Assembly: GCA_038496445.1 (NCBI GenBank)
Contig: JALMLS010000072.1
Coordinates: 96,754 to 160,753 of the forward strand
Reading direction: 5' to 3'
DNA length: 64,000 bases
Source of the DNA: Trichosphaerium sp. ATCC 40318
Taxonomy: Eukaryota > Protista > Tubulinea
Shown: positions 576-60,900 of the stretch, one piece after another
Position numbering within the stretch: the first letter of the stretch is position 1
Layout: every line of letters starts with the position of its first letter
Translations under genes and position numbers: made by a program
Notes under the pieces: generated by a model
What the model was told of the DNA's origin: nothing
Seen by the model: only the letters and a program-made list of their open reading frames with translations
The model's database searches: none

Positions 576-3115
576 TCATTTGTCTTTGCCAGTGTACGCG
601 ACAATTCGGAAAGCTGACACTCTGCTAAGCCTTATAGACGCTGAGCACTATAATTTACATATGAAATTTACATTAAAAAAAAGTACGTTAACCAGTTTGG
701 GCGATAGGTCGAAAAATGATTTATTATTACTATGATACAATAATTACATGTGCTACAGACGCTCACCTTCTGAGTTTCTCTAAAGCATGACCCTAAAAAA
801 AAATTAACAACCAAGCAAACAACGCAACTCACAAAAAAACAAAAAAAAACCCGAAAAAAAAAATTAAAAGGTTTCTCCCTTTTTCCACCCTACAGAACCA
901 CCTCATGTGTTTATATCGCCCATAAAAACAGTATTTTCAGGGATGGTAAAAAAAAAATTGAAAAATGATTTGAAGCGTAATCTTGATCTCAAGCGAAAAA
1001 AAAAAAAAGCTTACCCGTTTGACGATCATGATTTCGCTGTATGGACCACGTTTTTGTAATAAATCAATACGCTCTTTTGATTTTAGCGCCAAAACAGCTG
1101 AAAATAGAGAAGCAGCTACAGAACGTTTCTGCATACGTCCAGCACCATGAATACTACAAAAAAAATAAACAACAAGTTCCATAAAACTCGCAAAAAATCA
1201 AAAAAAAAATCAAAAAAAAATCAAAAAAAAAAGCAAGAAATTACTTACGTTTCTACCAAATCGTCGAACTTTAGTCTATCTACACCCTGGGATTGGAATT
1301 CCTTACGTAGGGTAATAGCTACACCAAGATCACGCGCAGTAAATGCAGCCTCTGGCGTAGAAGCAGAATCGGAGGTAGAAGTAGTGGTACGCGAACGTGT
1401 GTCAGCCTCATTCTGTTCTTCTCCCATAATGATTGGAGAACCTGGTGTACCTGGCGAACCTGGGGAACCTGGGAAACCTGGAGAGCCTGGGAAACCCGGA
1501 GAACCTGGGATTTGTTCCATCCCTTCACCACCATCAACACGATCATCTGAGTACTCTCCACCACGACCCTGTAAAAACAAAGATTAATAACAACATTTGT
1601 TTTGCAACGAACAATATCAACAAATTACATAGGTCAACGAAAGAACTCTCAATTGACGCACATGTGCAGCAAATCATAAAAAAAAATTCAAAAAAAAAGA
1701 GTTTGCGTTCAAAACATCCTTGGTAAGTACCATGAGATATGCAGGTGCTTTCAATGTCATGTTACGTCTAGTAACATTCATAAGAGTAGGGTTAAGACTT
1801 CTAAACGCTGGCATGCTTAGAAGAGCTTCTGGACCGTCTATTTCCATTTGACGAATCTCCATATCTTCTGGAGTATCTGGGACATATCCTACTTGTCTTA
1901 CAAGTCTATCTACATTACCCAGCCATCCGTGCATTGTTCTAGATTCACAATAATAAGTCACAATCCAAAAAAAGAATAAAAGAAGATTTCAGACTTACGT
2001 TGTTGAAAGTTGAGTTTTTTTGTCCATTCTGACCATTGATTTTGTTTCACGTGGCTTCTTACGACGTTCTTGAGGTGGCAGCATGACACCTAAACACATT
2101 AGAAGGAGATCAACGCTGAAAGCGCCAAAAAAAAACCAAAAAACGCCAAAATTCAAAAAAAAGCTTGTGTTTTGTTTACGAACCCGGCGATCTACTCTCT
2201 GTAGTAGGGTCTCTTAATTCAAGATCATCATCTTGTACAATTGCAAGACCATCATCGTCAGGATTGTCGAAGGCATTTTCCATCTCAAAGTCCTCTCTAT
2301 GTTGGTTTTAGTCTCTGGAGCTACTAGCTAGTGTGAGAAAGCGTCATACCCGCCAATAACATCGATAACATCTTCTAGCTGTGCAAGACGTTGTGCAAAG
2401 TCATCTGACGTGGCTTCTTTTATTTGGGAAGCTGTATAAGATGGTTAATAAAAAAGTAACGTTTAGAAAGCGTAACAAAGAAAAAAATGAAGTTTTTTTC
2501 AGTCTCAGAGTGTTTACCAGCTATTTCATCACGCTGTGGGAATAGGTTTAAGCTCTCAGCATCAATGAGACCATCTTCCATTGCCGGTACGTCACTGTAG
2601 AGTTAGTTTTTTTGAAATATTTGAGTTTTTTATCGTACGCAATATCCATATCGGTTGGTAAGCTAATATCATACTCTGGGAAGTGCTCTGGAAGCGTAAT
2701 AGCGTTTATATTTGCTTGGGTTTGATCTAAATCTATTTTGGCGATTTCTGTCCTCTAAACGCTTTGTTAGTTTCCATATTGTCGTAGATTAATACGTACA
2801 GTCTTTCGCCGTAATTTAACGAGTGCATCAGAGCAATCTGTGTACAAGTAGTGGACTTTCTTCTGATAGATACGTACAACACCAAGGAGCAAATGACCCT
2901 TAAGACGCAATGCGAGGCGTACTTTTGGGTTTAAAATATGCTCTACAACGGAAAATAAGTATTTTAAATTGTAATTTAATACACTACGTACCAATGGTCT
3001 GTGATATATCTGTGTCGTTAACTTGCGCTTTTGTCAATTTCTTTGGCCAATGCGCTGCGAGCCATACTTTACCAAGAACACCTTGTCTGGCTAAAACTAC
3101 TTGTAGAAAAAACAT
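576..3115 (-). CDS. RAD21: Rad21/Rec8-family cohesin kleisin, multi-exon; 3' end uncertain
   Basis: N-terminus MFFLQVVLARQGVLGKVWLAAHWPKKLTKAQV...|HILNPKVRLALRLKGHLLLGVVRIYQKKVHYLYTDCSDALVKL is the Rad21_Rec8_N motif. Near the C-terminus, KRSVAASLFSAVLALKSKERIDLLQKRGPYSEIMI is the winged-helix motif. Last exons below 1013 are tentative; Rad21 vs Rec8 not resolved. Confidence 0.85.
1435..1510. repeat. 9-bp-period coding repeat, (G-x-P)8, inside the kleisin
   Basis: ggagaacct ggtgtacct ggcgaacct ggggaacct gggaaacct ggagagcct gggaaaccc ggagaacct; the minus strand reads PGSPGFPGSPGFPGSPGSPGTPGSP. Confidence 0.9.
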
Positions 3116-9043: not shown

Positions 9044-9287
9044 CAAGGTTAAGTGTCTCTAAAAACTGTGTTAAGGCGTGCTTTGTATCAATAAATCAAC
9101 AATTTACGGTAGGTCGCTACAAATGGTTTTCGGTTTTGGTTTGTAGAAGTGATGTTATTTCTTGTACTAGTGTGTGGCGCATATACTATTATGACTTTGG
9201 CTGTTTACTTAGTTAAAAGACCATACGAGGAGGTAATCACTTCAACGGTATCGTACATTAATTACTCTAACACCACGTAAGGGAAAA

Positions 9288-9860
9288 ATGTCAAAATGTC
9301 ATCTATTGCATCTACCTTTGGAGCTACATCTTGATATTATTGATTTAGACCCTACATTTGCCAAATGGCCACTATTATCAAAATATACAGCGACAACAAC
9401 GAGGTTTGATAGTGACTTGAATAAACATGGAAAATGGATGAAACATAAGAATGTGCTTGGCTCAAAAAAATCAATGTTGTTAGGCCAAGAACGTTGGAGG
9501 CATGGTCAACTTCATGGAGAGTATAAGAGTTGGTATGGAGTACATCACAAACATATACAAGATGTGTTGCACAAAGAACAAACTCAAATGAGCTGTCATT
9601 GTTATTACAGTAATGGTAAAAAGGAAGGTGAATACAAAGAGTGGCATCAAAATGGTGAATTGCGGAGACATTGTTACTATGTTGATGGTAAATTAGAAGG
9701 AGAATCTAAGCAGTGGTATAACAGTGGACAAATATATGAGGACTCTAATTTTGTATGTGATGAACTAGTAGGAAGTTACAAGCAGTGGAACAACCATGGT
9801 TTGTGTACTGTAGACGGTAGTTATGTGGATGGTAAACTAGTAAGATCCAGAAAAAGGTAA
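9288..9860 (+). CDS. F-box-like + MORN-variant (YwqK-type) repeat protein, paralogue 1, single exon
   Basis: N-terminal LLHLPLELHLDIIDLD...KWPLLSK...TTRFDSDLNKHGKW, then ~24-aa repeats such as GKKEGEYKEWHQNGELRRHCYYVD and GKLEGESKQWYNSGQ. Confidence 0.85.
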   Translation: MSKCHLLHLPLELHLDIIDLDPTFAKWPLLSKYTATTTRFDSDLNKHGKWMKHKNVLGSKKSMLLGQERWRHGQLHGEYKSWYGVHHKHIQDVLHKEQTQMSCHCYYSNGKKEGEYKEWHQNGELRRHCYYVDGKLEGESKQWYNSGQIYEDSNFVCDELVGSYKQWNNHGLCTVDGSYVDGKLVRSRKR

Positions 9861-16982: not shown

Positions 16983-17663
16983 TTATTCTAAATACACCAC
17001 CTTTTGTTCGTCATTTTCATAGTAAGAATGGTGTTTCAATTGGCCATAGATATCCCACTCCTTATGCTGTCCTACTTGCATACCATTATCACAATGACAT
17101 TCTTCAAGAAGTTGTCCGTTCTTATGCCAAAACTTAATTTCTCCATGTTGCTCATCATTGACGTAATTAGAATACCGCTGTAATACTCCACTAGCATACC
17201 ACTTTCTACTAAGTCCATTTAACTTACCATCAACATACTCACACGCTTCTTGTATTTGACCGTTTTCATACCAACGCTTATACACTCCATGAAGCTCATC
17301 GTGTTTCCAACATACCTGAGAAACAGTGTAATGATTCTTATAGTATAAAGGTGACCATCTAGCTTGGTTTTTGTCGCATTGTTGTGACGATTTCTCTTTA
17401 GATTTTTGGACCATCCACTTGCCATGTTTTCTCATTTTACTATCGAACCTAGTGGTTATTGCTGCGTGTCTTGATAGGATAGGCCACTTAAAGTATACTT
17501 CAAAGTCTAAATCACCGATACAGAGAAGTAACTCAACTGGAAGGTCTAACAGGCGCGTTTCAGAACTTTTTGGGAAGTTGTAAGTAGTTTTCTACGAAAG
17601 CTTGTTATTATATAACTGGATAGTTTCGTAAGGCTTATGGCATACTTTGGGTTTTGCGTCCAT
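16983..17663 (-). CDS. F-box-like + MORN-variant repeat protein, paralogue 2
   Basis: Short leader exon MDAKPK|gtatgc...ttcgtag|, then one exon: RLLDLPVELLLCIGDLDFEVYFKWPILSRHAAITTRFDSKMRKHGKW followed by MORN-variant repeats (ELHGVYKRWYENGQIQEACEYVDGKLNG). Confidence 0.8.
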
Positions 17664-18412: not shown

Positions 18413-20213
18413 TTACAGAGCGTTTTTGCGCTTTGCTTTGATGACCTTGATACGTTCAATAGGACTGAATTCAAGCTCTTCTAATACATCTGAGGTGATG
18501 TCTCCAGGTTTGATACCTGATTCATTCATCAACGATCCAAGTTCTTGTGCTCTTGCACTTGAAATACCCAACGTCGCCAATGCTGATTGCCAATTAAATT
18601 TGGGAGTAGCGATTGATTGATTTTCTTGAGGTGGACAGAACTCCGACTAAATGAACAAATTAAATGTGAAGAAAATAAAATTAAAACAAGACACCTTTGT
18701 GTGAGCAACTGAAACATGAGGCTTGTCATTCCATGATTGTTGAGATAACAGTGACATATTGTAATTTGATGAAACAGATTCAACATTTAAGGTATCTACA
18801 TCAATTGGCAAGTGATGATTGTCAACCTAAATACCATGTGAGATAGGTGTGCTTGTTTTCCAGTACTTACATTGTTGATGTATTCATCTCGATTTTGTTG
18901 TATTTTAAAGGCTTCAAGGGTATTTTGAATGATATCTAGATGTTCAGGATCATCTCCAAACTTGGTGTAATCATGATTGGGATCAACCACAGCTTTTGAC
19001 AAGTACTTATCTTTTCTGTCTTCTTTTACCTCTGACTTCATTGCTTTCACAGCATCATCATTTTTATCTTTTGACGTTACTTTATCTGTTGCGGTTACTT
19101 TACTGACCGCTTTAAAGTGCTTAAGGATTGTTAGACAAAAAGAAAGACAAATAAGATTTCAAAGTACCTTTTGATAATTAGTGAATGTTAACTTTTGTGG
19201 CGTTGATTGACCATGTTCATTATTTCCACCTGTGACCAACTGAAAGTCATGAGATATTGCCAAGTAATCATGTGCTTTATTGGCAAACTCGACATATTTT
19301 CCAGGTAATTTTAGTGGTTTGTTTGATGAGAACGAACCAATCCATTTTCCACTGCCCCAACCAAACAAACAACCTTCATCATCAATCGCAAATGATGTAC
19401 ACACACCAGCGTGTACGGATTTGATGTTATTGAGTCCATGAATGATAGCCTGGGCATGCTTGTGGTCAGTGCCGAACCCAAGACGCCCATCCTGTTGACT
19501 CCAAAAGGAAATACTTGTCCTGACTTGAGGAGAACAAGTACATGACAATAACCAACAGCAATATCAGTGGCATCATCAATACTTGGAACACGTGAAATTG
19601 TCTTTGGTTTCAAGAATAATGATTTATCTTTTGCTTTATGTTTGGTTGTTCCCCAAAGAAAGATATGACCTGTTGATGTCATTGCTCCACTTACATAGCG
19701 ATTAGTTTGAATTTTGTTGACATGATCTAGACTTGTAATACGTTTCGGTGAGTTTACTTTCTCCTTGTCGAATGAATGGCCCAATCCATCCCATCTGTTG
19801 TCTCCCCAAGAGTAGACATGACCTGATTGTGATAACGCCATACTCGCATAATAAGCAGAGACTTTCGTGATATTGTTGAGATATGGAACACGTGTTGGTG
19901 ACGAAACAGGTGACTTGAAGTGGCCCAGACCCAATGACCCATTAAAATTGTATCCCCATGAATACATAATACCGTTTGAATCAACTGCAAGGCTATGAAG
20001 GGATCCAGCAGCAATACAGACGATATTTAGGAGTGACTTAATTGGTCTTGCGATAGGACTCGTATTTTCGTCTGTGTTACCCAATTGGCGGCAATAGTTT
20101 TGTCCCCACGTGTAAACAAAGCCATCGTCTGCGATTACCATTGAATGTTTGTAACCAGAGGCCAAACGGTTAATATATTGTAATCTAACCGACGAAGTTT
20201 GCGGCTCTGCCAT
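18413..20213 (-). pseudogene. RCC1-repeat protein with C-terminal SAM-like domain; one frameshift at ~19493 (pseudogene or sequencing error)
   Basis: RCC1 repeats (IAAGSLHSLAVDSNGIMYSWGYNFNGSLGLG). The frame changes at FGVN/xDGRLGFG. Three clean GT-AG introns downstream lead to WQSALATLGISSARAQELGSLMNESGIKPGDITSDVLEELEFSPIERIKVIKAKRKNAL*. Confidence 0.75.
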
Positions 20214-20522
20214 TACTGAAGAACTGATTTATCTTGATAAAAATCCAATCAGGCGGTTGGAAAATTAACTCCTTCAGGTACGGGTTTTGTTACCGAGCAG
20301 ACAATAAATTCGCACTCGCATCGTATATTAAGTTACACTAGACTGCTTAACCAGAGTCGCAGTTTATCCTACTGCCAACGGGTTGACTACTTTAGGAGGA
20401 GTTGAAGCACTTAAAACTCGTGCAAACTGAATGCAATAAATAAAATAGTTGTTGTTAGCTACATTGTCCATCGTATCACCCCTTATGTTGTACCATTAGT
20501 TCTGTTTAAAAACTAAGAGTAC

Positions 20523-28965: not shown

Positions 28966-29312
28966 TCTTGTTGGTTTTTTGTTGATTTGAGTAACGATTT
29001 CATCGGAAATTCACATTTTTTCGCTCCATTTAGAAAAGCTTCCGAGGGTGATGTATTTAGCGAGGAAATAAAACTGTATGGCGCTAGAATTGTAATATGT
29101 AGTAGTGCTTGATTTGGAACAAACACGTTCACAGAGAGAAAAGAACCGTTTGACGTTTCACGTCAAAACTCATAGCACTAGCTTACAAAACATAATAAGG
29201 GCGTAAAACCGCTATCATAGTTCCCCACGTGCCAGGTATGTAAGCTAGTTGACTGACTGCGGAAAAACTCGTGGGTAAAAAAAAAACAGCGAAAAAGCGA
29301 CCAAAGCGTCAA

Positions 29313-30038
29313 ATGACTGAACATAAAAAAGAAGCACCTATTGCTACTCCTGACAGCCATGTTCTTTCTTCCCTGCGCGTCACAATAATTAAAACGCAAT
29401 GGAATGCCAGTTTAATTGATCCTCTCGCTGAGCGCGTGGAGAATAAGCTGGTATCTTGTGGTGTACCCGCTGACTTCATTACTGTTGTCAAAGCTCCAGG
29501 CGCCTATGAATTACCTTATACAGCGTCTTTAGTAGCAAAGAAGAACAAAGAATGTACATACACGAATTCTCAGGCAATTTCTAACAAAAAGGTGTAGTTC
29601 CTTTCCCAACAGTCATAATATGCCTTGGTGTCCTTATTAAAGGCGAAACGATGCATTTTGAGTATATTTCACAAGCAGTAACCCAAGTACGTCCTCAAAT
29701 CAAACCTAGGGCAGTTATCTAGACAAAAGAATTAAGGCCGCTAACTAAAAGCCGTTTAAAATTCCGTCACGTCACAAGCCACAGAACCATGCTGTAGTAT
29801 CGCTCAAAGCACTTTTTAACCCATCTATACTGCTCTGAGAGAACCATCGCTAACATCGTTTTACCTTTAGGGTATAATGCGAGTTCAACTTGATAATCAT
29901 GTCCCTGTGCTCTATGGTGTTCTGAATTGTACGAATCTAGAGCAAGCAAAGTCTAGATGTATAACGGATGCGACACACGGAGAATCACTAGCAACATCAG
30001 CAATTACAATGGCAACACTCACTGACACGTACAAGTGA
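29313..30038 (+). CDS. ribH: 6,7-dimethyl-8-ribityllumazine synthase (RibH/RIB4)
   Basis: LRVTIIKTQWN, APGAYELP, IICLGVLIKGETMHFEYISQAV, PVLYGVLN; two introns. Confidence 0.95.
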
Positions 30039-36748: not shown

Positions 36749-39670
36749 ATGGCAGCGGTAACCGTAAGCTCGGGTTCTGAATCATCCAAGGATGGTATTA
36801 GGAGCAAAAAGAATAAAGCCTCATCGGTACTACTACGGTCTAACTCATTTGTACTACAATAGATATAGCCTCAAAAACGCTGTTTTTAATTCAAAAAACG
36901 AAAAAAAACCCAAAACGCTCTCCCTTATACGCCACTAACGATAATATTGAAGAGACTTAAACGCCAAGCAAGCGTAATGAGGGTTGATAAGACTAAAATA
37001 TTCCCTCCTGAAAAATCGATAGAGGACGTCGTGGTATATATTGTGAGCGAAAGGCTAGGTATTCATACCGTTTTAAAGCTTTATTTCATCATTTTTTTAG
37101 CAATTAATTACTTACTTAATTTAAAATAGGTATTGAAGGTGTAGATGTTGCTCCCTGGGTTAAGCTACTTAAACAGCATCTAATTTTCAACTTGGGTTTA
37201 TTATGCAGGCAAGTGTTGTCCTTAAAAATCGATTTTTCGGAAAAAACCGAAAAAGGTCAAAACAAGAAATCGAAAAAAAAAAAAAAAAGTTGTTGATTTT
37301 GAAAGCGCTCAATTTCATTTTTTATTGATATAATACGCATAAACGTGATTATTTAATAATAATTAAAGCGTTTTAAAGGAGATTCAATGGATTTTTTTAA
37401 GTACAAGATTTCCAATCTTAACGTTTTGATAGGTTGTCTGTAGATCGCTTAAAACGCGTTGGATTACCTCTATTACTTGAAGAAGAGCTTGCACAAGCTA
37501 TTGATTGGTCTACAAACCAAAAAGAGAAGCTACCACTCGTCGTATGATCAAAAAAACAATAAGTTTTCTTTTTTGGAAGGTTTTCGGCTTTCTTCCTTTC
37601 TTGGGTCTTATGATCTTTACTAATGCTTTTAATTACCTAATAAATATACAAGGCAATGTTTGCAGGTGATATACAGACTCTAAAGAGTAAAGTACCGTCC
37701 GTATCAAGCTCTGATAGGAGTTCTCTTTTGGGTATTACAACAAAAGAGCGAAAAATGATTAAAGACAGCTGGGACAAAGCTATGGCTATCACACGGGATT
37801 CAGCAGACGTGGATCTATTTGAGTACGCTATTGTATTACGTTTAACTACTTTTATTATCTAAATATATGTCATTTACATTAATATTCTGAAAACTACAAA
37901 AACGTGATTGTTTTTCTTTACTGCTCTTTTTTTTTGTTATTCGCTCCTCAACATGTCACAAACTATTTCTTTCTAGGAGGTGCATTACTATATTATTTAT
38001 ACATATATACTCATTACACATATACTATTACAAACATCATGAACTCTCACTCTTCGTGGGCAACCTTTTTTTTTTTTCATGTTCCTACGTTTGTCTGTTC
38101 CATTTTTTTCTCGTTCAGAGCTCTGTTATTTTCACCTTTTGTATTTTCTCTATTTGTGATTGTAATTGTTAACTCTGACTGTTTCTTTTAGGACATTTTA
38201 TAGCAAATTCATGAGCGAAAATCATGTGGCTAAAAAGTTATTTGTGGTATGTTACAAATAGAGAACTTTACCAAGTGTTTTGTATTTTTTTTCCTGAGGC
38301 GACAAGTTTATTTAACACGTTTTTATAGGGCACAACACCGAAGAAGCAAGCCTCTGTATTGAAGAAAATTATACGTAAGATATTAGAGTCATTAGATAAC
38401 CCTACAGAGGTCACTACGAGACTAAGCAGGTTGGGTAAGTATAATAAAACAAGATTTAATTCGAGTTTGTTGATCTTTTTTCAGGTGCACGTCACATGAT
38501 TTATGGAGTCAAGGGTGAAGATTTTAGATCATTTGCTTTGGCGTTTACACAAGCTATGGAGGTTGTTTGTACTGATATTGTACGTGTTATTATTTTCGTT
38601 CAAAAAGCAGCCGGGTTACAGTCGAAACAAAAAAACGGTTTTTGTACACTTAGTTTGAACTTTTTCACGTTTAATCTGCTTTGGATACGTTTTGTGCATA
38701 CTGAAATAATTTTTTGTGATATCTATGGATATATTATTGCTGTTGCTAATATTCAGGATTCTTCAAAAAGTGTCTAAGATGCTTTACTTTTTTTGGAAAG
38801 CAGCTTGCATTATTTAACTCATTTTTTGGTTTTAGATGACACCTGCACTTAAAGAGGCATGGTATTCTCTTATAATAAATATGGGGAAAGTAATGACAAG
38901 AGATTATGAAAAGATTAAAGAGGTATGTCACGTGATTTTATATGGATTCTATTGCATAGTTTTTTTATTTTTATCAAAAAATCACTTTACTGAATGAGTA
39001 TTATCTAGGGAGTTAAGGGTGACTTGTGGAAACGGTCAGGCGCTAAATGGACAAAATATACATATAAAATCACACATGAAACATTGTTTATTTACAAAAC
39101 AGAGGAAGTATGTTACGACCACTTAAAACATTTTTTTTTTGATTTAGCAATTTGTATTTCGGTGTTTTTATTTTTTTTCTCCATTCGGTGGTTGACTAGC
39201 GTTATCTAACTATCTTCATTAAGTGTATTAAAGTTCGAGATGAGATTATTCTTAGAGATGTCACAAACAAAGCATTTGGTGGTGACTTGGATAGTGCACC
39301 TTATAACTTTTGTTATTCTTTTGATATCAGAAATGCTGGTGGAGCTACCAAATATCAATTTTGCTTCGACACACAAAACGCTCAGAAGAAGTTTGCTATG
39401 CTAGTCAATGAACGTGTTGTGGCACATGCGCGTGCATATAGAGAGAGGGATGATTCTGGATCAGGTATGCACATATTTCGTATGAAGTTTCAAACGTTTT
39501 TTTTTTTGCGGAACGACTTTTTTTTCGTTCGTCGTTGACTTTGGTTGATAGGATCTATCAAATCTCAGAGCTCTGAAATGCATCTAGTAAGAGACTTTTC
39601 TAGTAAACTAAAAGGGGCCATGTCACGTAAGACCAAGACACTATCACGACCGACTTCAGGAAAACAATAA
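36749..39670 (+). CDS. SAM-like + globin + PH domain protein
   Basis: Globin: ITTKERKMIKDSW, FYSKF, AKKLF, KKQASVL, LSRLG|ARHMIYGVKGEDF, TPALKEAW. PH: VKGDLWKRSGAKWTKYTYKI..LFIYKTEE..YQFCFDTQNAQKKFAMLV. SAM-like: PWVKLLKQHLIFNLGLLC|RLSVDRLKRVGLPLLLEEEL. Confidence 0.85.
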
Positions 39671-40128: not shown

Positions 40129-40938
40129 ATGTCATCTAAACGGGCAAGAATAAAACCTCACAAAGTAGAGTATTGTAGTATTCTACTGCTACCAATAGAG
40201 CTACGACTTGATATCATGGACTTGAATGCTGAAGCTTCCAGACAGCTTCCACAACTTTGCAAAGAGATTGCTGTAACAAGCGGTCGTTATGATGAATCTC
40301 TCCTAAAACATGGGAAATGGAAGAGTCCGTTAGTGAAGTTCGGAAACTATCTATTCTCAGATGTACATAGATATATCCTTGAGCACTTCGAACATGGATA
40401 TTGTATTGAAAGAAAAACTTGGCATGAAACAGGTGGTATCGCTTCACATGCTTTTTATAGCAAACAGAGTACAGGCACAGATCAAAACCAATATAGATAT
40501 AGACCTTCAGTTGCACGGACATGTTTTAGGCTACCTAAGTGTAAAATATATTGCACGTGGGAACGAGAATCTCTTTGGTACTATGATGGTAAAAGAGAAG
40601 GAGAATATAAAGAATGGTTTCGAAATGGAAATCTAAGATTACATGAATTCTATAAGGATGGATACAAGCATGGAGAGCAAAAAGAATATTATCACGGTAA
40701 ACTAGCATTTCAAGAATTTTATAAGAATGGTAGCCGAGAAGGACAACATAAGAAATGGATAAAAGGAATATTGGTTGATTGTAGTAATTATACCAATGAT
40801 GTTAGACATGGTATTTCAACATCATGGTATAAAAATGGAAAATTACAATCTCGAAACAACTATGTTAATGGTGTTCTTCAAGGAGAATTTATCGAGTGGG
40901 ATAAAGATGGAACTCAAATTGAACAAAACTGGGATTAA
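40129..40938 (+). CDS. F-box-like + MORN-variant repeat protein, paralogue 3, single exon
   Basis: Probable start MSSKRARIK; ILLLPIELRLDIMDLNAEASRQLPQLCKEI..SGRYDESLLKHGKW, then repeats such as GKREGEYKEWFRNGNLRLHEFYKD and DVRHGISTSWYKNGKLQSRNNYVNG. Confidence 0.85.
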   Translation: MSSKRARIKPHKVEYCSILLLPIELRLDIMDLNAEASRQLPQLCKEIAVTSGRYDESLLKHGKWKSPLVKFGNYLFSDVHRYILEHFEHGYCIERKTWHETGGIASHAFYSKQSTGTDQNQYRYRPSVARTCFRLPKCKIYCTWERESLWYYDGKREGEYKEWFRNGNLRLHEFYKDGYKHGEQKEYYHGKLAFQEFYKNGSREGQHKKWIKGILVDCSNYTNDVRHGISTSWYKNGKLQSRNNYVNGVLQGEFIEWDKDGTQIEQNWD

Positions 40939-41560: not shown

Positions 41561-42748
41561 ATGCGCATCGTCTTCTTTGTTATATTGGCGTGTACCATTA
41601 CCTCTGTATCCGCTTATGGACACCGACGTAATACTGAGGATAACCCTTTCAGCGGCCCTACTTGGGAGAACCAAACAGCTACAGCAAAAATAAGCCAGCT
41701 TTGGTCTGTTATTTCTTCCGATTCTACCCCTCTTGGTTGGTATGGTCCCCTCACAATGCCGCAATTGTTTATAGAGTACATGAACGTAACATTTGATACT
41801 ATATCTGACCAGCTACCAAAGCAAGGTACCTACTATCTCAAGCTCCAGTATTTTTTTCGTTTTCGTTTTTCTTGGGTTTCTTCATTTTACCATTACTTAC
41901 ACCTACTGCCAGGTCTTTTGGAGACAGATAGACTAAAATTAATACATACCGTCGGTGGGGTAGCTAAATGCGCCTGGAAACCATTAGGGAACCACAATTA
42001 TACCGGTATTTTCAGTAGCGGCGCTGATAACGTCATCTGTCGATTCTCAACGGCGACACAACCTGAAACTGGTAATTTCCCACCTGGTCTTAGTCTAAAG
42101 GTCTTGATAGATGGCCAAGACTCCGTAAACACAATGGCTATGTACGTACAAAGCCTTCGAATACAAAACGCTTCTCAACTAACATTTATTTAAAGGTATT
42201 CGTTGTCGGGACAAGATTCTTACAATTTTTTCAAACATGATTTGACAAATCACGTGCCTATGTACGGTACTGCTGCAGCACTTAAACTACAACTCCTCGT
42301 GAAAAAATTCAAAGAGGCTTCAAAATGGGCTAACTTACTTGGACTTAACACGTGGGCTCGTCGCACCCAAAACGGAAGTGCTGTTGACCGACCAAATTAC
42401 CCATACAGATTGATCTTCCACCCAGCCAACAACGTCCGTTCTGCTTTCCCTGACGGCAATCCTGGTGTAATTCTCCCAGTACAACTACAATCTGTTCCAA
42501 TAGGTCGTATCTATGACGTTTACGCCATTGCTACACCTTTTGGTAAACCTCAAATGATCGGACAACTTTCAACCACTACTAAAGTTACTGGATCCAACTA
42601 CGGTGATAAGAAATTGTTCTTTGAGCATGTTAGAATGGATGACGATTTTAATGATCATCCAGAGTGGATAGAACCTACCATTCAGATTACAAAAGAACAA
42701 GCCTCCGTACCAAAATTTGTATACCCTGATTTATCTTTTACAGAATAA
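41561..42748 (+). CDS. Secreted small catalase-fold (catalase-related haem) protein
   Basis: Signal peptide MRIVFFVILACTITSVSA; RLKLIHTVGGVAK, YTGIF..ICRFS, PGLSLKVLIDGQDSVN, SYNFFKHDLTNH; two short introns. Confidence 0.7.
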
Positions 42749-46484: not shown

Positions 46485-47158
46485 ATGGGCAACCTTTTCG
46501 GTTGGGCTAGGAATACGTCAGTACGTGCAGTTATCGCTGGTTTGGACGGTGCTGGCAAAACTGTACGTTATCCCGTTGTTTTTCAATAAAAGACGTTAAT
46601 ATTAATGTGATGCGGCTTGTTATAGACGTTGTTGTACAGCATGAAGCAAGGTACTCCTGTAGAAACTATTCCAACCATTGGGTTCAACTTTGAGACTATA
46701 AACTATAAAAACCTTCAATTTAGCGTATGGGACATGGGTACGCGGAGTTTGTGTCTAATAATTTACAAAACCTCTAAAAATTGCCCGTAGGAGGTCAACA
46801 TAACATAAGAGCGCTATGGAAGCACTACGTAACGTATTTGGGCGGTCTTTTTCTTGTTATAGATAGTACAGACACTGAACGCTTTGAAGAAGCCAAAAAC
46901 GAGTTAGAAACGCTTCTAGCACATCCAGACTTAGCACGTGTGCCGATTTTAGTTTATGCAAATAAGCAGGACTTGGGAAATGCGATGACAACTGACAAAA
47001 TCAAAGAACGATTTAATTTTGATAAATCTTGCTCTGAAAGAAAGTGGCGAGTTCAAAAATGCTCAGCATTGACGGGTGAAGGAGTGAAGGAGGGTTTAGA
47101 ATGGTTACATATGACAATAGAAGCTCGTCGTAGACGGACAAACAGATCATGGTTTTAA
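46485..47158 (+). CDS. Arf/Arl-family small GTPase
   Basis: MGNLF (myristoylation), [22 protein letters not shown]|[14 protein letters not shown]. Confidence 0.95.
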
Positions 47159-50457: not shown

Positions 50458-53400
50458 TCATTCTTTCTTCTTTCCTCTTTTTTTCTTCTCTCTTGCTACT
50501 TCAGTCTGCTCATTTACAAGTGTGCTGTTTGATGAAGACTTGACTGCTATTTCCTCAGTATAAGATATCACTTCTGTAGTGTTTTCATCTGCTATGCTGC
50601 TATCCTCTGTGTATGAAGTATCATTTGCTCTTTCGTTTTTCAACTTTGCAACTTCAGCTTCTAGTTCTTCAACACGTAATCTCAGGTGACTATTGACTGG
50701 TGTTTCACTTCTCAAGTTGCGATTATTTGTGCTAGTATTCTTCATAGAAACCTCCGTCATTGACTCCTTCTCTCTTGTCATGTATACCATCTTAGGAATA
50801 AGAAGAACCAGAACTGATGATAGGGGTCCAAGAACGATACATAATGATCGTAGAATGTACAAAAGTTCTCTATTCGATGGTCCAAAAAACTAAAGAAAAA
50901 AATGAGAAAAAGATGAAGAAACTACAGTTTTCTTTCGCATCACCATTTGATAAAAAAAATAATTAACTTACTTGAATGACAATAAAAAGATCAACAAAGA
51001 AATTCAATATATAAACAGCCAGCCCAATCAACCTAAAATGTCAAATCAATAGACTAAACTCCAAAGATAAAAAATCTGAAACAAATCGCGTTTTCAGATT
51101 CACGTCGTACTTTGTTTCATTGTACAACAGAGACTTCAACTTCCATATTCTGAATACCCAGTAAAGTCCATATACAAGAACACCCAAGTTGACAACACCA
51201 AGTATCGATACAAATATGATATCCACCTTGTTATTTTGACAAAGTAAAAATCATCTGATAAGATATGCTCATTCTCAATCTCAAGTCTCGCTTTTCCTTT
51301 ACTTACGATTGTCCATAACACGAGTATCACAATTTCAATACCGAGTATAATACCGACAATAGGAAGAATCATTGCATTCGTCACTTTGAATACTTCCAAA
51401 GACTTGACTAAAAAGATTTGTCCTATCCGGTAAACACGTGCAAATAACGCTCCATAAGTCAACTATAACAATAAATCAAAACCAAAATGATTAATAATTA
51501 GCTTACACCAAACCCTACAGCAAGAAGCCATCGACATAGGCTACAATGTAAATCGTTTGTGTGAAGAGACCAAAAGAAAACGGAAGAATACATCAGAATT
51601 GTACCACACTAAAGGCAGGTAAGTATTCGCCTGACTGACGAAGATAAAAAGGTAAAACAGCAAAAAACCTATAATGACTTACCAGCATGAGTACCACAAA
51701 CAACGGTTGAGAAGCGCGAATCACGAGGTTGTTCCTTGCCAAAATCACAAATATTATCAAGCCAATTGTCAACAGTATAACCACCCCAACAAGACATGCA
51801 ATAGCGCGCTCACTAGTGTACACTAACAACCACTTACTATTTCATATTTCATAGCAAACCTCTACTTGTTAACGTACAATACCATCCATAGCTTGTTTGA
51901 CGTTGATCCCATCTTGGAACTGGATAAACTACACCCTTTGTAGCTGCGAATAGAGGAGCTACAATTTCATAGTTTAAGTCTTTATCAAGTTGATAAGTCA
52001 GAACATTTCTTCCAGCGTTTTGACCATATCTATTAATCTGAAACTCTCCACTGAACCCTCTCATATCCATTGTATCAATCGCAGATTGTATTAAATCTGG
52101 ATCTAAAGAGCTAGAGAATAAAATGAGAACACGTTTCTAGTTTTCTTCAAAAAAATGTCTTCATTCGTCTTACTTTGCTTTCTCAACTGCGTATTGAATT
52201 ATATATCCCGTCGTGTATCCAGAAGTTCCATGATGTCTGGGTTCCCTGTCGAATTTGTCTTTGTACTTTTTTGCAAATTGACGACCTGAAGAGAGAGTAG
52301 TGCTATTAGATATGAAGTGATGATATCGAACAGAAGGATCAGTTTCTTCATATACTTCAGAACTAAGCCTCTCATCAAACTATAAAAATAATCTTAGTAT
52401 TGTCGTCTACTTTACCGCTACATACAATACTCCCCGCCACCATCACATACTGCGCGTCTGGTCCTATGTTTTCTTGAACAACCTCAGGTACAACCAGACA
52501 AGGAATTGAAAGTAAAAAAGCCTATACAAATGATTGAAAGATACCGAAGTAAAGGTTGCTATTAAGTACCTTTGGATTAAATCCAAGCTCACGAGAAAGA
52601 CGCAATAACGATGAACAAGAGTTCCATGTACCACCAACAAGCACATCTATTCATTTTAATGATATTGGATCAGGTAAGAGTTTAAATACAAACCAGGTTT
52701 TATCTCTATCAATTCTGCTATCATTTCTTTCAAATCCTTTTCTTGACCATCAGGATCAAATCTGCTGCTTATTTGCTTTTGATACACACACTCTAGCTTC
52801 AAGAATCCCATATCTCTTATAGCACCCTCTGCAACACCAACCAAAGCAGCTAGTATTCATTATAAAACGTTAAATAAGTGGATTGTAACTCGCAACGTAC
52901 GTTCCCAATAAACTGCAATTCTTTTTGTTCCTTGGATTGTCAGGATATTAAGTGCTTCACGCATAAAAGAAATCGTAGGTATGATGAGCTCTATGGTATA
53001 TGGAAGTCGTCTACCAAATGCATTCTCACATGGATATGCTAGATTTTCATCACAGATAAGTAAAGCAGGTACTCCCGATGCAGCTACAACAAAAAAGTAA
53101 ATACCATAAGCCAGTTTTGACTATTTCTTTGTTGATGAAAAAACCACGTGTACAACATGATTACGCACGTTCAATACTGTTAACTTTATGCTCATGACCA
53201 ACAATAGCAGCAGGTAGACCATAGTTAATCGTACGAGGCTAAATAATGAAAGTTACAAAAATTCTGTAATTGTTTCGAACCCAATTGGAGGAAGTGACTC
53301 GTGAATTCAAGAGACGTACCAAAATTAAAAAGTTCACATCATGATCATTCACCAGTTGTAGTGCAGCAGTAGTAGAAGCATTTACCGTAGTTTCTAATAC

Positions 53401-54930: not shown

Positions 54931-57323
54931 TTACAAATCATCAGGATCTAGGTAACCCATTGTTGGATCATCTTCTTCTTCTTTGTGTGTGAAAATAGCT
55001 TGATACTTTGATCCAGGACAAGGTACTTTCAAACCAAGATCCTTTGAGAAATTCTTTATAACACTCTGAAGTGAACTGCATTTTGCTTTTCCGATTTGGT
55101 ACTTTCCTCCTGGAGAGTGCTGTACACGGAAGTGGTTAACTTTCACCTCTTTTTTCTTACCACTCTTTGCTTTTGCAGATATTGCATAAGAACCTGGGTC
55201 ACGTGAACTAAACCTGACCAAATACGTTCCTGAAAAAAATTTGTGAATACCCAAGAATAAAATAAGAAAATCATTGCTTACCTGTTCTAGAAGCTCCTTT
55301 TAAAAGTTTTTCTGTTTGACCAGATGAAATATCTCCGTGAAACCACTCTTCTGATAAAACACTACGAACCTAACAGCACACGGTCAATAAACATATAAAG
55401 AATGAAAGTTTGATTTTTTTTAACGGTTTTTTTAACCTTGCTCCTCCACGTACAGTGTCTAGTGTTTCTTTACCATTAAGAGGTCCAAACCATTGTAGGA
55501 ATCTATAAAAACTATCCATGGTAACTTCATCATCCTTGGCTACCAGGAATTAATGTTACAAGCATCAAAAAAAAAAAAAGCATTTCTTTGCTTCAATAAA
55601 AAAGCAGTACCTAACAACATCTCTAAGCAAGCCGTCATCTCCTCATTCACCAGCTCTTTACCCAGAAATTTTGTAAATTTTGCAATAAATTCATCCCACG
55701 TGACCTCTGTCTAAACGAAACGACGCATAAGTAAAACTCAAGAAAACTTTTTGGATTTGTTTATAAAACTGTTCTTGCTTTACCTCTTCTTTGAAGTATT
55801 TCTTCCAAAACCTGATACCACGTTTATCTTTCAATGTCCCTTCAATCACAATACTCTCAAAATCATCCAGAATCTAATTTAAAACCATTTTAGCACGTGT
55901 AGAACCAATAAAATTCGAAGAAATTAACTGTTAAATAAAAAAAATTTCGTAACGTACGTCTTGGAATGATGGCCTGTTCTCTGGGTTAGCATCCCAGCCT
56001 ATAACAATTCAGTTAGTAGATGAACCTGCACAAAAAGCCAAAAGGGTTTTAAGCTTTTTTTAAACGTACAAGCTTCCAATATCTTTTTGAGTGTTGGTGG
56101 GCAGTTAGCAGGTATAACAGGGCGCTTATGCTCTTGACATACAGCCTGCACCATAGAAGAGTATGTTTCGATTTCAGGGAACGGATCAGAACCAGTTAAA
56201 ATCTCCCATAAGACCATACCGTAACTGTATAAATCGCACTTTTCATTATACCTAAAAACAAAAAATGTTAATTACCAATACTTTACTCACAGCAATCAAA
56301 ACGTACGATTCATTCTGTAGGACCTCAGGTGCGATCCATAATGGTGTACCAACGGTTCCATACGCTGCAGGATCATCTCCTTGAGCTTTAACATGACTTA
56401 GACCGAAATCAGCCTAAAATTCTATTACAACTGTTCACTGCCAATCACAAGCAAAAAAAAAAACACAAATTGTTCTGCTTTATCATAAATAATTTATCTT
56501 CAACGTACAACTTTAACACGGCCATCTTCATCCACCAATAAATTAGGTGTCTTCAAATCCCTAGAAGAAAACACGTGAACAACAGCAAACGTTTGACAGC
56601 AAAAAAAAAAAACAATTTGTTTTTTTATGTTAATTATTCAGATAAATCCTTCTGCGCAGCACAAACAAAGCGGTTTTTGATGATCGTGAGCTCAAAAAAA
56701 AAAGGTGAATTGTGATCAACCTACCTGTGAATGGTGACAGGGTCTGTGTTATGTAAGCAGTTCATTCCCTGTGCTGCCTGTCTAGCCATGTCCATACGTT
56801 GAGCAAACGTTAACTTTTTTTTTTCCCTTTTAAGTACTTTGCGAACAGAGCCCTGATAGTTTTAAACGCGTCAGGAATAATATTTTACCAGATAGCCGTA
56901 AAGTGAAAGAAAAAAAAAACTGCAAAAACGTTTATCGGTCAGAAACGACGCTAAATTTTAGTTGAAGTTGGTAAAAACGCCATGAGATGGTTTATATCTA
57001 CCTTACGCATGAGTTCTGTGACTATCATTAAATCCCCTACTTCAGTACAAGCCCCCATAAATAATAATACGTTGGGGTGTTTTAGATTACTACGTAATAT
57101 CGTTAGTCCCGTTTAGAGCATTTTTAATAATGACATGCCTGAAAAGCGCTATTTCTTTTCTGAATGCATCTAATGTGTTCTGATTTGGATCCTGTATTAT
57201 TAGGCGCTTAACAGCGACGTCCTTGCCGTGAAGTGTACCCTCAAACACCTCACCAAATGTACCAACACCTAGTTTTTTACCCATTGTGATGTCACTCTTG
57301 CCTATTTCGAATCTTGAAGCCAT
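54931..57323 (-). CDS. TKL protein kinase with C-terminal SH2 domain (Shk-like)
   Basis: LGVGTFGEV, VAVK, KHPNV, IHR|DLKTPNLL, ADFGLS, GTPLWIAPE, EEWFHGDIS, GTYLVRFSSRDPGSYAIS. Confidence 0.93.
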
Positions 57324-57909: not shown

Positions 57910-60900
57910 TTAGGTAGTTTGGTATTGTTTGTTGGTTGGTGTGGTACATGAATCTATATCCTTGTCCTTATTACCAATAGTAAACGTAACAGACCTATCA
58001 GGTCTGCTTGTTACTTGTCCTGGAGCACTCCATAATGACCCAGACGTTGGTCTAGAAACTCTTGGAGAAACGTCAAAAATGCCTATCCGTCTGTCGCTCA
58101 ACTCGCCCGGTTTTGCCGCCTATACATGTCATTAGAGTCTCCAATTGTATAATCAACAGTACCTGTACGGATATGCTAACAGCAGGAGCATTAAAGTCCC
58201 TATTGTCGCATTTAAGCATCGTCTGTTTAAGTCGTCTTCTGGGTGTTCTCCAGCTGAAAGTGATTGCTCCGTTGTGTGTAAAATCAGCGTCTTGGAGATG
58301 CTCATCTGATCGAAGAAGGTAGGCTACTTGTGTACATATTACAGCACTAGGTTTCCCGTTTGTGTTATTAGTACGGTTTCGAGAAGCAGGAAGTGTTGTT
58401 GCTATTAATTGCTTTGTTCCTGGTGCGATTTTAGTTGGTGGCGCTTGTGTCCACGTCTCGCCTTCGCTTCCAGTTGTAAGCTTTAATCTGTGTAGGTAAC
58501 ACTTTGTAGTATTATTAATCTCAATGACAGCAGTGCGTCGCTTCGCCTAAGAACATTAAGAGACCGTAAAATACATATTACTGAAAAGACAAAAAAAAAA
58601 CGTACCAACAGACGTTGTTTAGTCTCTTCGTACGTCTCCTCTACTACTTCTTCTGGTTCTTCCATGGATATATTATTAATCAAATCAGCCTCTAGATCGC
58701 CCATAATTTTGATTAAGTGCTTCAAGCCGTGAATGTACTCTGTATCTATACAAGGAGGATCCACTCGCCAAGTGTGAGCTAAATATCGAGGAAAAAAAAA
58801 TTAGTCCGCTTCGCTTTTGTGTCGTTTTACGGTCACGTGACCACGTGGTAAGCGTAAATTAAGTATGATTTAATTTAAAAAATTACTTACCAAAATCTAC
58901 AATCTTGACTAAAACATTCCCAGGTACATCAACACCACTAGACGCATCATAGATAAATAGAATAGAGCTTCCAATAAAAGAAAAATCAGTTTGTTTTTGA
59001 AACCACTTTAAAATCTGCTTTACTGGTCCAATCATTGCTTGTAATGTCTTTATCCTTGCTTTACCACCAGGCGTATTTGTGACATACTGTAAAAATGCTG
59101 GTTTGATCTGTACAGGTTTGAGAGAAACACCCCAAGGCTTATCTCTCTTTATATAGTCTTTTATATCCGTTTGCCAAACTTTCATACCACAAATACGGAA
59201 TCCAAGGCTAGACGATGTACTGTATGAATCAACAGCATTCAAATACCCCTTCTTTATAAAACCAGCTGTATGATCAGCTGATCTCCTTCCCACTATAAAA
59301 AAAAAATTAAAAATGTCACGTGAGCGCAGAACAATAGTTTTCTTTTAGATTTCCTTCTTTTTTTTTTCGACAATAAAAACTTTGCCTCCTGGAATGAATT
59401 CGTTACTTACTCTTTATATCCATTATACATGGCTTGTCGTAACCATAAGTAAGATCTTCCATTATAATATACTGTAAGGAACCGGCTTGAGGGTCATTTA
59501 TAACAGTACGACCATCAAACTTTGGAAAAAAACTTGGCGTATCATTAGGCATATTTCTTAAACCTTCATAGAACGTCCACTCCCTACAAGCTGTTAAAAT
59601 CCGCTGCCGATAGGCACAAAAAGAAACAGAAACACACTACAAAAAAACACAAACGAATCATAACTACACCTCAAGCATGGAAATAGAAAAGAAAAGCTTC
59701 TATTGTTTAGAAAAAATTGGTTTCAGGTTTTTTGGCGCCCTTCGGATCGTTTCGGGTCACGTGCCTTTTTGACCATGGTTTAAGAATCTTATCACCCATT
59801 TTAAGTATCCCTCCTATTTTTCCATTACCTTTATGCCCTGCAACCTGGTTTTGAAACTGTTGAATATTATCTTGAACAAGAACAGGCATAGGATCTGCGC
59901 AACGCATAAGTGCACGGAGTATTCCCATTTCAAACACCCGTTGCATCCTTGGATCAGAAAGACCCGCTTTAATAAATTCCTAAAGTAGTTTTAGATGTAA
60001 AAGAACAGAGTAAACAATAACAAGTATGAAAAGGGATCAAGTTTTTTGCTCAAACAAAGATTTTTCTTCTTTTTTTTTTTCGGTATTAATTTACCTCTAA
60101 ACCAACTTTATCGAGTTCCTTATTATGCCCAACTTTATCTACAATACCATCTCCAGCAGAAGAAAAATTAACAGCTATAGAACGTGATCTTTGGTTTGGT
60201 TTGTTTCCTTGAGGTTCGATACTTGGAGGGTTGTGATTAAGTCTGTATATCAGTTCAAAAACCTCGTGACGGTGTAAAAAACCCTTATCAGAGCGATCCA
60301 TCATTTTGAAGGTAAATGTCAATTTTTCCTCAGGTGTCCCTTTTGAAAAGGTAGCATAGCCTTTAATATAATCCTTATACGTAAGCATATCATCCTGGGT
60401 ATGTAAAAATGCAAAAAACCTAAATGACAAAACATAAGAACACCAACAAGACAACAAACACAAAAAAAAAAAAAGAAAAAAATCAAAAAAAAAGACTTGA
60501 AAGGAAAAAACGCACATGTTCTCCCAAAAACGCTTAGATGCACCATTTAGTCTCAAATTCTCTTCTACAAACTCAGCACCACTTATCGTCCCTTAAAAAA
60601 ACCGGTTAAACAAAGAAAGACTAGTAGTCTAGTCATTTTGTGATACACTAAATAGTGAGCACGTGCGGTAAAGTTTATGTCTTTTGTGACTTTTTTACTT
60701 TATGAGTGTTTATGGGAACGCAAAAAATGACTTGTTTTATTCAAACAATAGGCAGTTTTAACAGCTAAAAGAAGTTTTAATTTTTTTACAGTACCTGTAG
60801 GGTATTTTGCCATAAAAGTAGCATGATGCCTACTGAGCTGTTCTGTTGTAACTAATAATATGTTTTAGAGCACTATTTGATGGTCATATTTAAAATTAAA

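Follow-up and report, generated by a model that had tools for sequence, protein, structure and literature searches.

The window analysed here is a stretch of 64,000 nucleotides (nt) of contig JALMLS010000072.1 of Trichosphaerium sp. ATCC 40318, with a GC content of about 36% throughout. On its plus strand, at 36749–39670, it carries a spliced gene encoding a globin that runs directly into a PH-like domain. The gene consists of short exons separated by introns of 50–370 nt with GT-AG ends, and the model starting from the ATG at 36749 comprises 12 exons (E1–E12) and 1305 nt, that is, 434 codons and a stop, with all junctions consistent in phase. An MMETSP transcript (L001, 1312 nt, JGI sample 3300016894) from the culture of a marine protist aligns to the window at about 100%. 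Its open reading frame of 260 amino acids, P0001, is residue for residue equal to the exon model and is the sole member of its cluster. The DNA is eukaryotic, and a human origin was rejected on the GC content, the intron lengths and the match to a protist transcript. The features of the gene, all on the plus strand, are as follows (UTR, untranslated region).

36749–36826, plus strand: putative exon 1, 26 codons beginning with the first ATG; frame open, coding score +3.1, donor gtacta; the weakest exon
36992–37058, plus strand: putative exon 2, start of the SAM-like unit; phase-consistent ag/gtattc signals; no Pfam match
37130–37208, plus strand: putative exon 3, SAM-like unit; GC donor cag/gcaagt, phase-consistent, coding score +4.4; no Pfam or PDB match
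37433–37541, plus strand: putative exon 4, last part of the SAM-like unit; coding score +11.9, exceeding the 95th percentile of introns; donor gtatga; no SAM match
37653–37822, plus strand: exon 5, Ser-rich linker, globin A helix and start of the B helix; donor and last 29 nt in L001, acceptor predicted
37977–38191, plus strand: 215-nt intron segment kept in L001, from the alternative acceptor 37976/37977; brings a premature stop
38192–38246, plus strand: exon 6, B and C helices; in L001, and in P0001 from the ATG at 38211
38329–38434, plus strand: exon 7, E helix (Gln E7, Leu E11) and EF region; junctions in L001, Pfam Globin, NCBIfam flavohaemoprotein alignment
38485–38579, plus strand: exon 8, F helix with His F8, and G helix; in L001, Pfam Globin, aligns to the F8 region of a rice non-symbiotic haemoglobin
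38836–38922, plus strand: exon 9, H helix; in L001, Pfam Globin; ends in phase 0 at the boundary of globin and PH-like domain
39009–39107, plus strand: exon 10, first PH-like strands; Pfam PH on P0001 109–196, predicted fold
39224–39464, plus strand: exon 11, remaining PH-like strands and C-terminal helix, 81 amino acids; in L001, Pfam PH, predicted fold
39552–39670, plus strand: exon 12, basic Ser/Thr-rich tail and TAA stop; in L001 and P0001
39671 to at least 39935, plus strand: 3' UTR, to the end of the L001 contig

The alignment blocks of L001 end exactly at the predicted splice sites of the gene. The transcript confirms the donor at 37822/37823 and the junctions E6/E7, E7/E8, E8/E9, E9/E10, E10/E11 and E11/E12, supports the TAA stop at 39668–39670 and a 3' UTR of at least 265 nt, and differs from the genome in one poly-T run at 38066 (T13 in the transcript, T12 in the genome). 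The globin–PH-like gene is expressed, and because L001 confirms all junctions from exon 6 to exon 12, the globin helices E–H and the PH-like part are carried by one mRNA. The first-pass annotation had assigned the globin and PH exons to a single gene, and their joint presence on L001 excludes that they belong to separate transcripts. With respect to its broader claim of one spliced gene over the whole of 36749–39670, exons 6–12 are borne out by the transcript, while the junctions of exons 1–5 are drawn from splice signals, phase and positive coding potential.

The globin was identified by the Pfam profile (PF00042), which matches P0001 at 32.8 bits and its residues 1–110 at 35.2 bits, with a cut-off of 22. 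Positions 51–136 of the 399 in the NCBIfam flavohaemoprotein model NF009805 align to P0001 (E = 1.8e-4), so that Gln E7 (38347–38349, Gln 19 of P0001) corresponds to model position 53 and His F8 (38493–38495, His 51 of P0001) to position 85, and the E7-to-F8 spacing of 32 is identical to that of Hmp. By inspection, Tyr B10 (38199–38201) and Phe CD1 (38241–38243), both in exon 6, stand 14 residues apart, as in flavohaemoglobin. The Trp of the A helix lies at 37770–37772 in exon 5, and Leu E11 is present in the distal pocket together with Tyr B10 and Gln E7 (spacing relative to NF009805, and inspection). The best PDB sequence matches of P0001 are plant non-symbiotic haemoglobins, cytoglobin and neuroglobin, with the F-helix motif ...RLGA-H..YGV aligned and the His at 38493–38495 placed on F8 of rice non-symbiotic haemoglobin 1 (nsHb1). 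The A-helix Trp, Tyr B10, Phe CD1, Gln E7 and His F8 named in the first-pass annotation are thus all where it had put them, and its Tyr B10/Gln E7 pair of the flavohaemoglobin type is found with the proximal His and with flavohaemoprotein spacing. At G5 (10 residues after F8), inspection of P0001 reveals Phe, not the Tyr of the flavohaemoglobin proximal His-Tyr-Glu triad.

Judged by its sequence, the protein is a globin of the F/M type with a flavohaemoglobin-like distal pocket. It is predicted to bind haem, and the Tyr B10/Gln E7 pocket, by analogy with NO-reactive globins, would be of high affinity and hydrogen-bonding. An FAD/NAD(P)H reductase domain was not found, the C-terminus being PH-like and the flavohaemoprotein match being confined to the model segment given above. 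The Protoglobin profile of the sensor family has no match in P0001 at E up to 10, and there is no transmitter domain. The earlier statement that the protein has no enzymatic output agrees with the Pfam and NCBIfam profiles, which detect no catalytic domain in P0001.

In the genomic model, helices A–H are all present. The match of helix A is weak: the last 30 residues of exon 5 hit 2 of 177,635 PDB chains, both of them globin A helices and correctly placed, at E of about 1. Against a complete globin weighs the structure of L001, the only known transcript, which bypasses the canonical E5/E6 junction. It starts at 37794 in exon 5 and then joins 37822 to the alternative acceptor 37976/37977 instead of 38191/38192, keeping 215 nt of the E5–E6 intron, which is not a multiple of 3. 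Its upstream frame meets a premature stop, at 38157 with the T13 of the transcript and at 38170 with the T12 of the genome. Because the kept 215 nt put a stop in the upstream frame, the called reading frame P0001 has Met 38211 as its first residue, and helix A and Tyr B10 are missing from it. The canonical acceptor, used by no recorded transcript, shows a strong pyrimidine tract, and splicing there recovers a typical B-helix motif. We infer the complete globin from the genome, because the sole transcript uses the alternative acceptor with its premature stop; splicing at the canonical E5/E6 acceptor would be needed for it. Of the complete 3/3 globin proposed earlier, the globin profile stands above its cut-off, and the full A–H set belongs to the genomic model. 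As a separate observation, the 215-nt retention in L001 may reflect regulated unproductive splicing or the assembly of a minor isoform.

The PH-like domain directly follows the H helix, with no linker, and the boundary coincides with the phase-0 intron 38922/39009. Pfam PH (PF00169) matches residues 109–196 of P0001 over profile positions 5–94 of 105 (E 0.002–0.0055). For residues 100–225 the AlphaFold2 model predicts 6–7 strands followed by a long C-terminal helix, that is, PH topology, and a Foldseek comparison of this low-confidence model with PDB gave a top 50 composed almost entirely of PH, PTB, FERM-F3 and Rtt106 domains (best E 1.3e-3, template modelling score 0.39–0.57). Since these two weak, partly independent lines agree, we rate a PH-type fold for the residues after the globin as probable, as judged from profile and model. 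Some results count against it. The PH score of 17.6–19.1 bits is below the Pfam gathering cut-off of 25.1, and both structure models, built from single sequences with no homologues for an alignment, are of low confidence, with a predicted local distance difference test (pLDDT) score of 42 for the whole of P0001 and 46.6 for residues 100–225. The whole-P0001 model was set aside as unusable. A phmmer search of the PH part against PDB gave no matches. Consequently, the PH domain of the first-pass annotation is retained as a PH topology with a sub-threshold profile match, while an assignment above the Pfam cut-off and a confidently predicted fold are not.

The binding properties of this domain are a different matter. 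The canonical phosphoinositide-binding motif, K-Xn-(K/R)-X-R, is carried by only a subset of PH domains. By eye, it is absent from beta1-beta2 of the domain studied here, where T-K-Y follows the beta2 Trp in place of the expected R/K-x-R, and on inspection the helix Trp of PH domains is replaced by Phe. From its sequence, the domain does not resemble the canonical phosphoinositide-binding type, and the idea that ligand binding controls recruitment to phosphoinositides finds no support here, the canonical motif being absent by eye. These observations, too, count against the interpretation favoured below.

The search for relatives returned only the gene itself. Among 1.84 billion proteins, the sole true match of exon 11 (81 residues) was P0001, at 100% identity. 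Nine other matches were rejected as spurious, being bacterial Ig-like, Flg_new and DUF7507 repeat proteins that summed short strand matches. As this full-library query spanned just one half of the PH-like domain and the search with the globin half was confined to a length-limited set, the sensitivity is limited. A word search with exon 11 gave no matches, and one with P0001 among proteins of 143–455 amino acids gave only P0001. Bacterial and archaeal genomes and viral contigs contained no relatives, tblastn of each exon against the window revealed no paralogues, and a PDB search with exon 6 gave no useful match. As none of the collections searched yielded a homologue, function cannot be argued from conservation, and this weighs against a functional reading of the gene. 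Full-text literature searches for globin together with PH or pleckstrin and SAM returned no described protein of this architecture, and the partners named in globin reviews and in surveys of protists are of the reductase, transmitter, calpain-like and cytochrome b5 kinds, with no PH domain among them. The earlier impression that the architecture is undescribed is therefore sustained both in the collections and in the literature. The globin–PH-like protein, possibly SAM–globin–PH, is a genuine new variant of chimeric globin, known from a single orphan gene.

On balance, we favour the interpretation that this is a nuclear gene encoding a chimeric F/M-type 3/3 globin, in which a PH-superfold domain joins the H helix with no linker between them and a basic tail rich in Ser and Thr comes last. 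The PH-like domain, together with the SAM-like module if that is real, would place the globin in a membrane-proximal or scaffold complex. The basic tail and the PH-like domain would give it an address or a partner, with no reductase or catalytic output, and O2/NO binding or redox chemistry would act locally at that site. Either the haem may alter a partner-binding surface through the H helix into the PH-like sandwich, which would be a sensor or scaffold role, or the globin may merely consume NO/O2 there. A eukaryotic analogue of the globin-coupled sensor, having recruitment and not catalysis as its output, appears quite doubtful to us. In such a sensor, O2/NO at the Tyr B10/Gln E7 haem would move the H helix, of which PH-like strand 1 is the direct continuation, and this movement would switch the binding of lipid or protein partners, while the SAM-like module would cluster the sensor. 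The proposed kinship with globin-coupled sensors survives as an analogy, but the globin is of the F/M type and does not match Protoglobin. Roles in SAM polymerisation and aerotaxis are pure conjecture.

By analogy, the same architecture could also serve without any sensing, as a locally tethered NO dioxygenase, O2 buffer or redox protectant in which the PH-like part is used only for localisation, and this tethered globin may be likened to the membrane-anchored globin X. The Tyr B10/Gln E7/Leu E11 pocket is that of NO-detoxifying flavohaemoglobins, which together with the lack of a detected output domain favours such a role; however, there is no reductase domain, and G5 is Phe instead of the Tyr of the flavohaemoglobin triad. 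We therefore consider the non-sensor role possible, if somewhat unlikely.

The chimeric globin may be longer at its N-terminus. Exons 2–4 show a helical pattern that is SAM-like by eye, and an N-terminal helical SAM-like module formed by them would give a protein of about 413–434 amino acids. Exon 1 is the least certain, and translation could instead start from the ATG at 36977, in a longer form of exon 2, giving 413 amino acids. At the end of exon 3 (37206–37214) there is an apparent GC-AG intron with the textbook donor cag/gcaagt, and a weaker in-frame gttgtc donor lies 6 nt downstream. The SAM-like unit fused to the globin, as claimed in the first-pass annotation, was not confirmed by profile or PDB matches exon by exon. 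Pfam SAM gave no match at E up to 10 to these exons, which at 22–37 amino acids are too short to decide, no SAM chain in PDB matched exons 3 and 4, and the exon-by-exon Pfam scan of the whole gene, whose exons have only 18–81 residues, was without a match. In addition, exons 1–4 and the E4/E5 junction lie outside the only transcript, which, like the missing SAM match, weighs against the fusion. Scans of metagenome contigs with DNA patterns for exons 4 and 5 were empty, which carries little weight as the presence of MMETSP contigs in that collection is uncertain.

The coding signal speaks for these exons, and the splice sites speak for the fusion. A codon-usage score trained on 2005 codons from the window has an intron mean of -7.3 (standard deviation 8.1), and in the proposed frame exons 1–5 score +3.1, +0.8, +4.4, +11.9 and +3.7/+11.7, which summed is about 3 standard deviations above introns. 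The gap between exons 4 and 5 is 111 nt, its donor gtatga is similar to the gta[ct]g[tc] of the confirmed donors, and the two exons join exactly in phase. A ctaat motif stands 12 nt before the AG of exon 5, and the acceptor aag/G resembles the confirmed aag/T of exon 11. We conclude that exons 2–4 are likely fused to the globin on the same mRNA.

The contrary arrangement is two adjacent genes, in which a small SAM-like protein ends at the TGA 37545–37547 and a separate globin–PH-like protein of 322 amino acids starts from the ATG at 37656, the SAM fusion being an artefact of taking an intergenic gap for an intron. Two signals tell against the fusion: the frame of exon 4 meets this TGA two codons past the proposed donor, and the ATG is in frame within exon 5, four codons after an in-frame stop. 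There is also an aataaa at about 37641, and no transcript crosses the E4–E5 gap, L001 beginning at 37794. However, the intergenic gap would be only 108 nt, whereas the globin gene itself has a 3' UTR of no less than 265 nt, and at the two places nearby where a stop-to-ATG gap on the same strand can be measured it is about 460 and 620 nt. Considering also the donor, acceptor and exact phase described above, we regard two genes as unlikely. It is very unlikely that the locus is mostly unproductive, with the premature-stop isoform as its main mRNA and little or no full globin made by a lineage-specific gene that is decaying or silenced through splicing: the only transcript assembled represents that isoform and no homologues were found for the gene, but open frames are kept in all 12 exons, the haem-pocket residues are intact, and the acceptor at 38191/38192 has its strong pyrimidine tract and restored B-helix motif.

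Among the known systems, the chimeric globin is most readily compared with flavohaemoglobin-like single-domain globins (the globin domain of Hmp, Vitreoscilla haemoglobin), with which it shares the 3/3 profile, the pocket residues, and the B10–CD1 and E7–F8 spacing; plant non-symbiotic haemoglobin, cytoglobin and neuroglobin are related to that F family. Unlike flavohaemoglobins, it has no FAD/NAD reductase, carries Phe at G5, has a CD region 2 residues shorter and is fused to a PH-like domain. As in the globin-coupled sensors of the S family (HemAT), an N-terminal globin stands directly before another domain, and in concept a haem input is combined with an output. Nevertheless, the globin is not of the sensor type, and its partner is not a methyl-accepting chemotaxis protein, cyclase, kinase or other transmitter. 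A possible membrane or scaffold address for a globin recalls the membrane-anchored globins (globin X, acylated invertebrate globins). These use N-terminal acylation, whereas here there are a PH-like domain, for which the canonical motif gives no prediction of lipid binding, and a basic tail. Androglobin and the cytochrome b5–multiglobin proteins of Guillardia theta (PMC4101818) are likewise eukaryotic proteins of several domains that include a globin, and their introns too lie at atypical positions. Their partner domains are other ones, and no sequence relationship to them was found. CNK, Boi1/2 and ARAP are membrane-proximal scaffold proteins with SAM and PH domains. Their SAM ... PH frame would be alike only if the SAM-like unit is real, and none of them is known to carry a globin.

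The gene is surrounded by features of other kinds. Three single-exon MORN_2 paralogues lie at 9237–9857 (plus strand), 16986–17591 (minus strand) and 40129–40938 (plus strand), the third of them 459 nt downstream of the globin gene. Ahead of the MORN_2 repeats all three have, at the N-terminus, the motif L-x-L-P-x-E-L-x-L-x-I-x-D-L, which by eye recalls an F-box, and they look like a local lineage-specific expansion. A long exon at 19314–20228 (minus strand) has RCC1-like repeats (Pfam WD40_RLD, 163 bits), and exons of lumazine synthase and of an Arf/Arl-family GTPase are present at 29253–29594 and 46778–47155 (both plus strand). Within 8 kb there are a fragment of a class-C seven-transmembrane receptor at 51139–51462, a classical SH2 domain at 54934–55299 and an inositol polyphosphate kinase at 58886–59344, all on the minus strand; the SH2 domain hints at phosphotyrosine signalling in the lineage. 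At 41561–42745 (plus strand), two long open reading frames follow each other (210 and 181 amino acids); their start resembles a signal peptide, Pfam gives no match, and together they may encode a single secreted orphan protein. A frame of collagen-like G-x-P repeats at 1248–1583 (minus strand) overlaps a Lys-rich frame on the plus strand, so that the coding strand is ambiguous. Rfam gave no match in the window.

Chimeric globins reveal what the binding of a haem ligand can be wired to, and the known partners of globins are reductases, chemotaxis transducers, cyclases, kinases, a calpain-like domain and cytochrome b5. The weight of the present case is limited, since it concerns one orphan gene for which neither a detectable relative nor a productive transcript is on record. 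A globin joined to a PH-like adaptor, possibly also to SAM, would extend the list of partners to pure localisation or scaffolding outputs, and such a globin–PH-like protein would offer a compact test case for haem-controlled protein recruitment.

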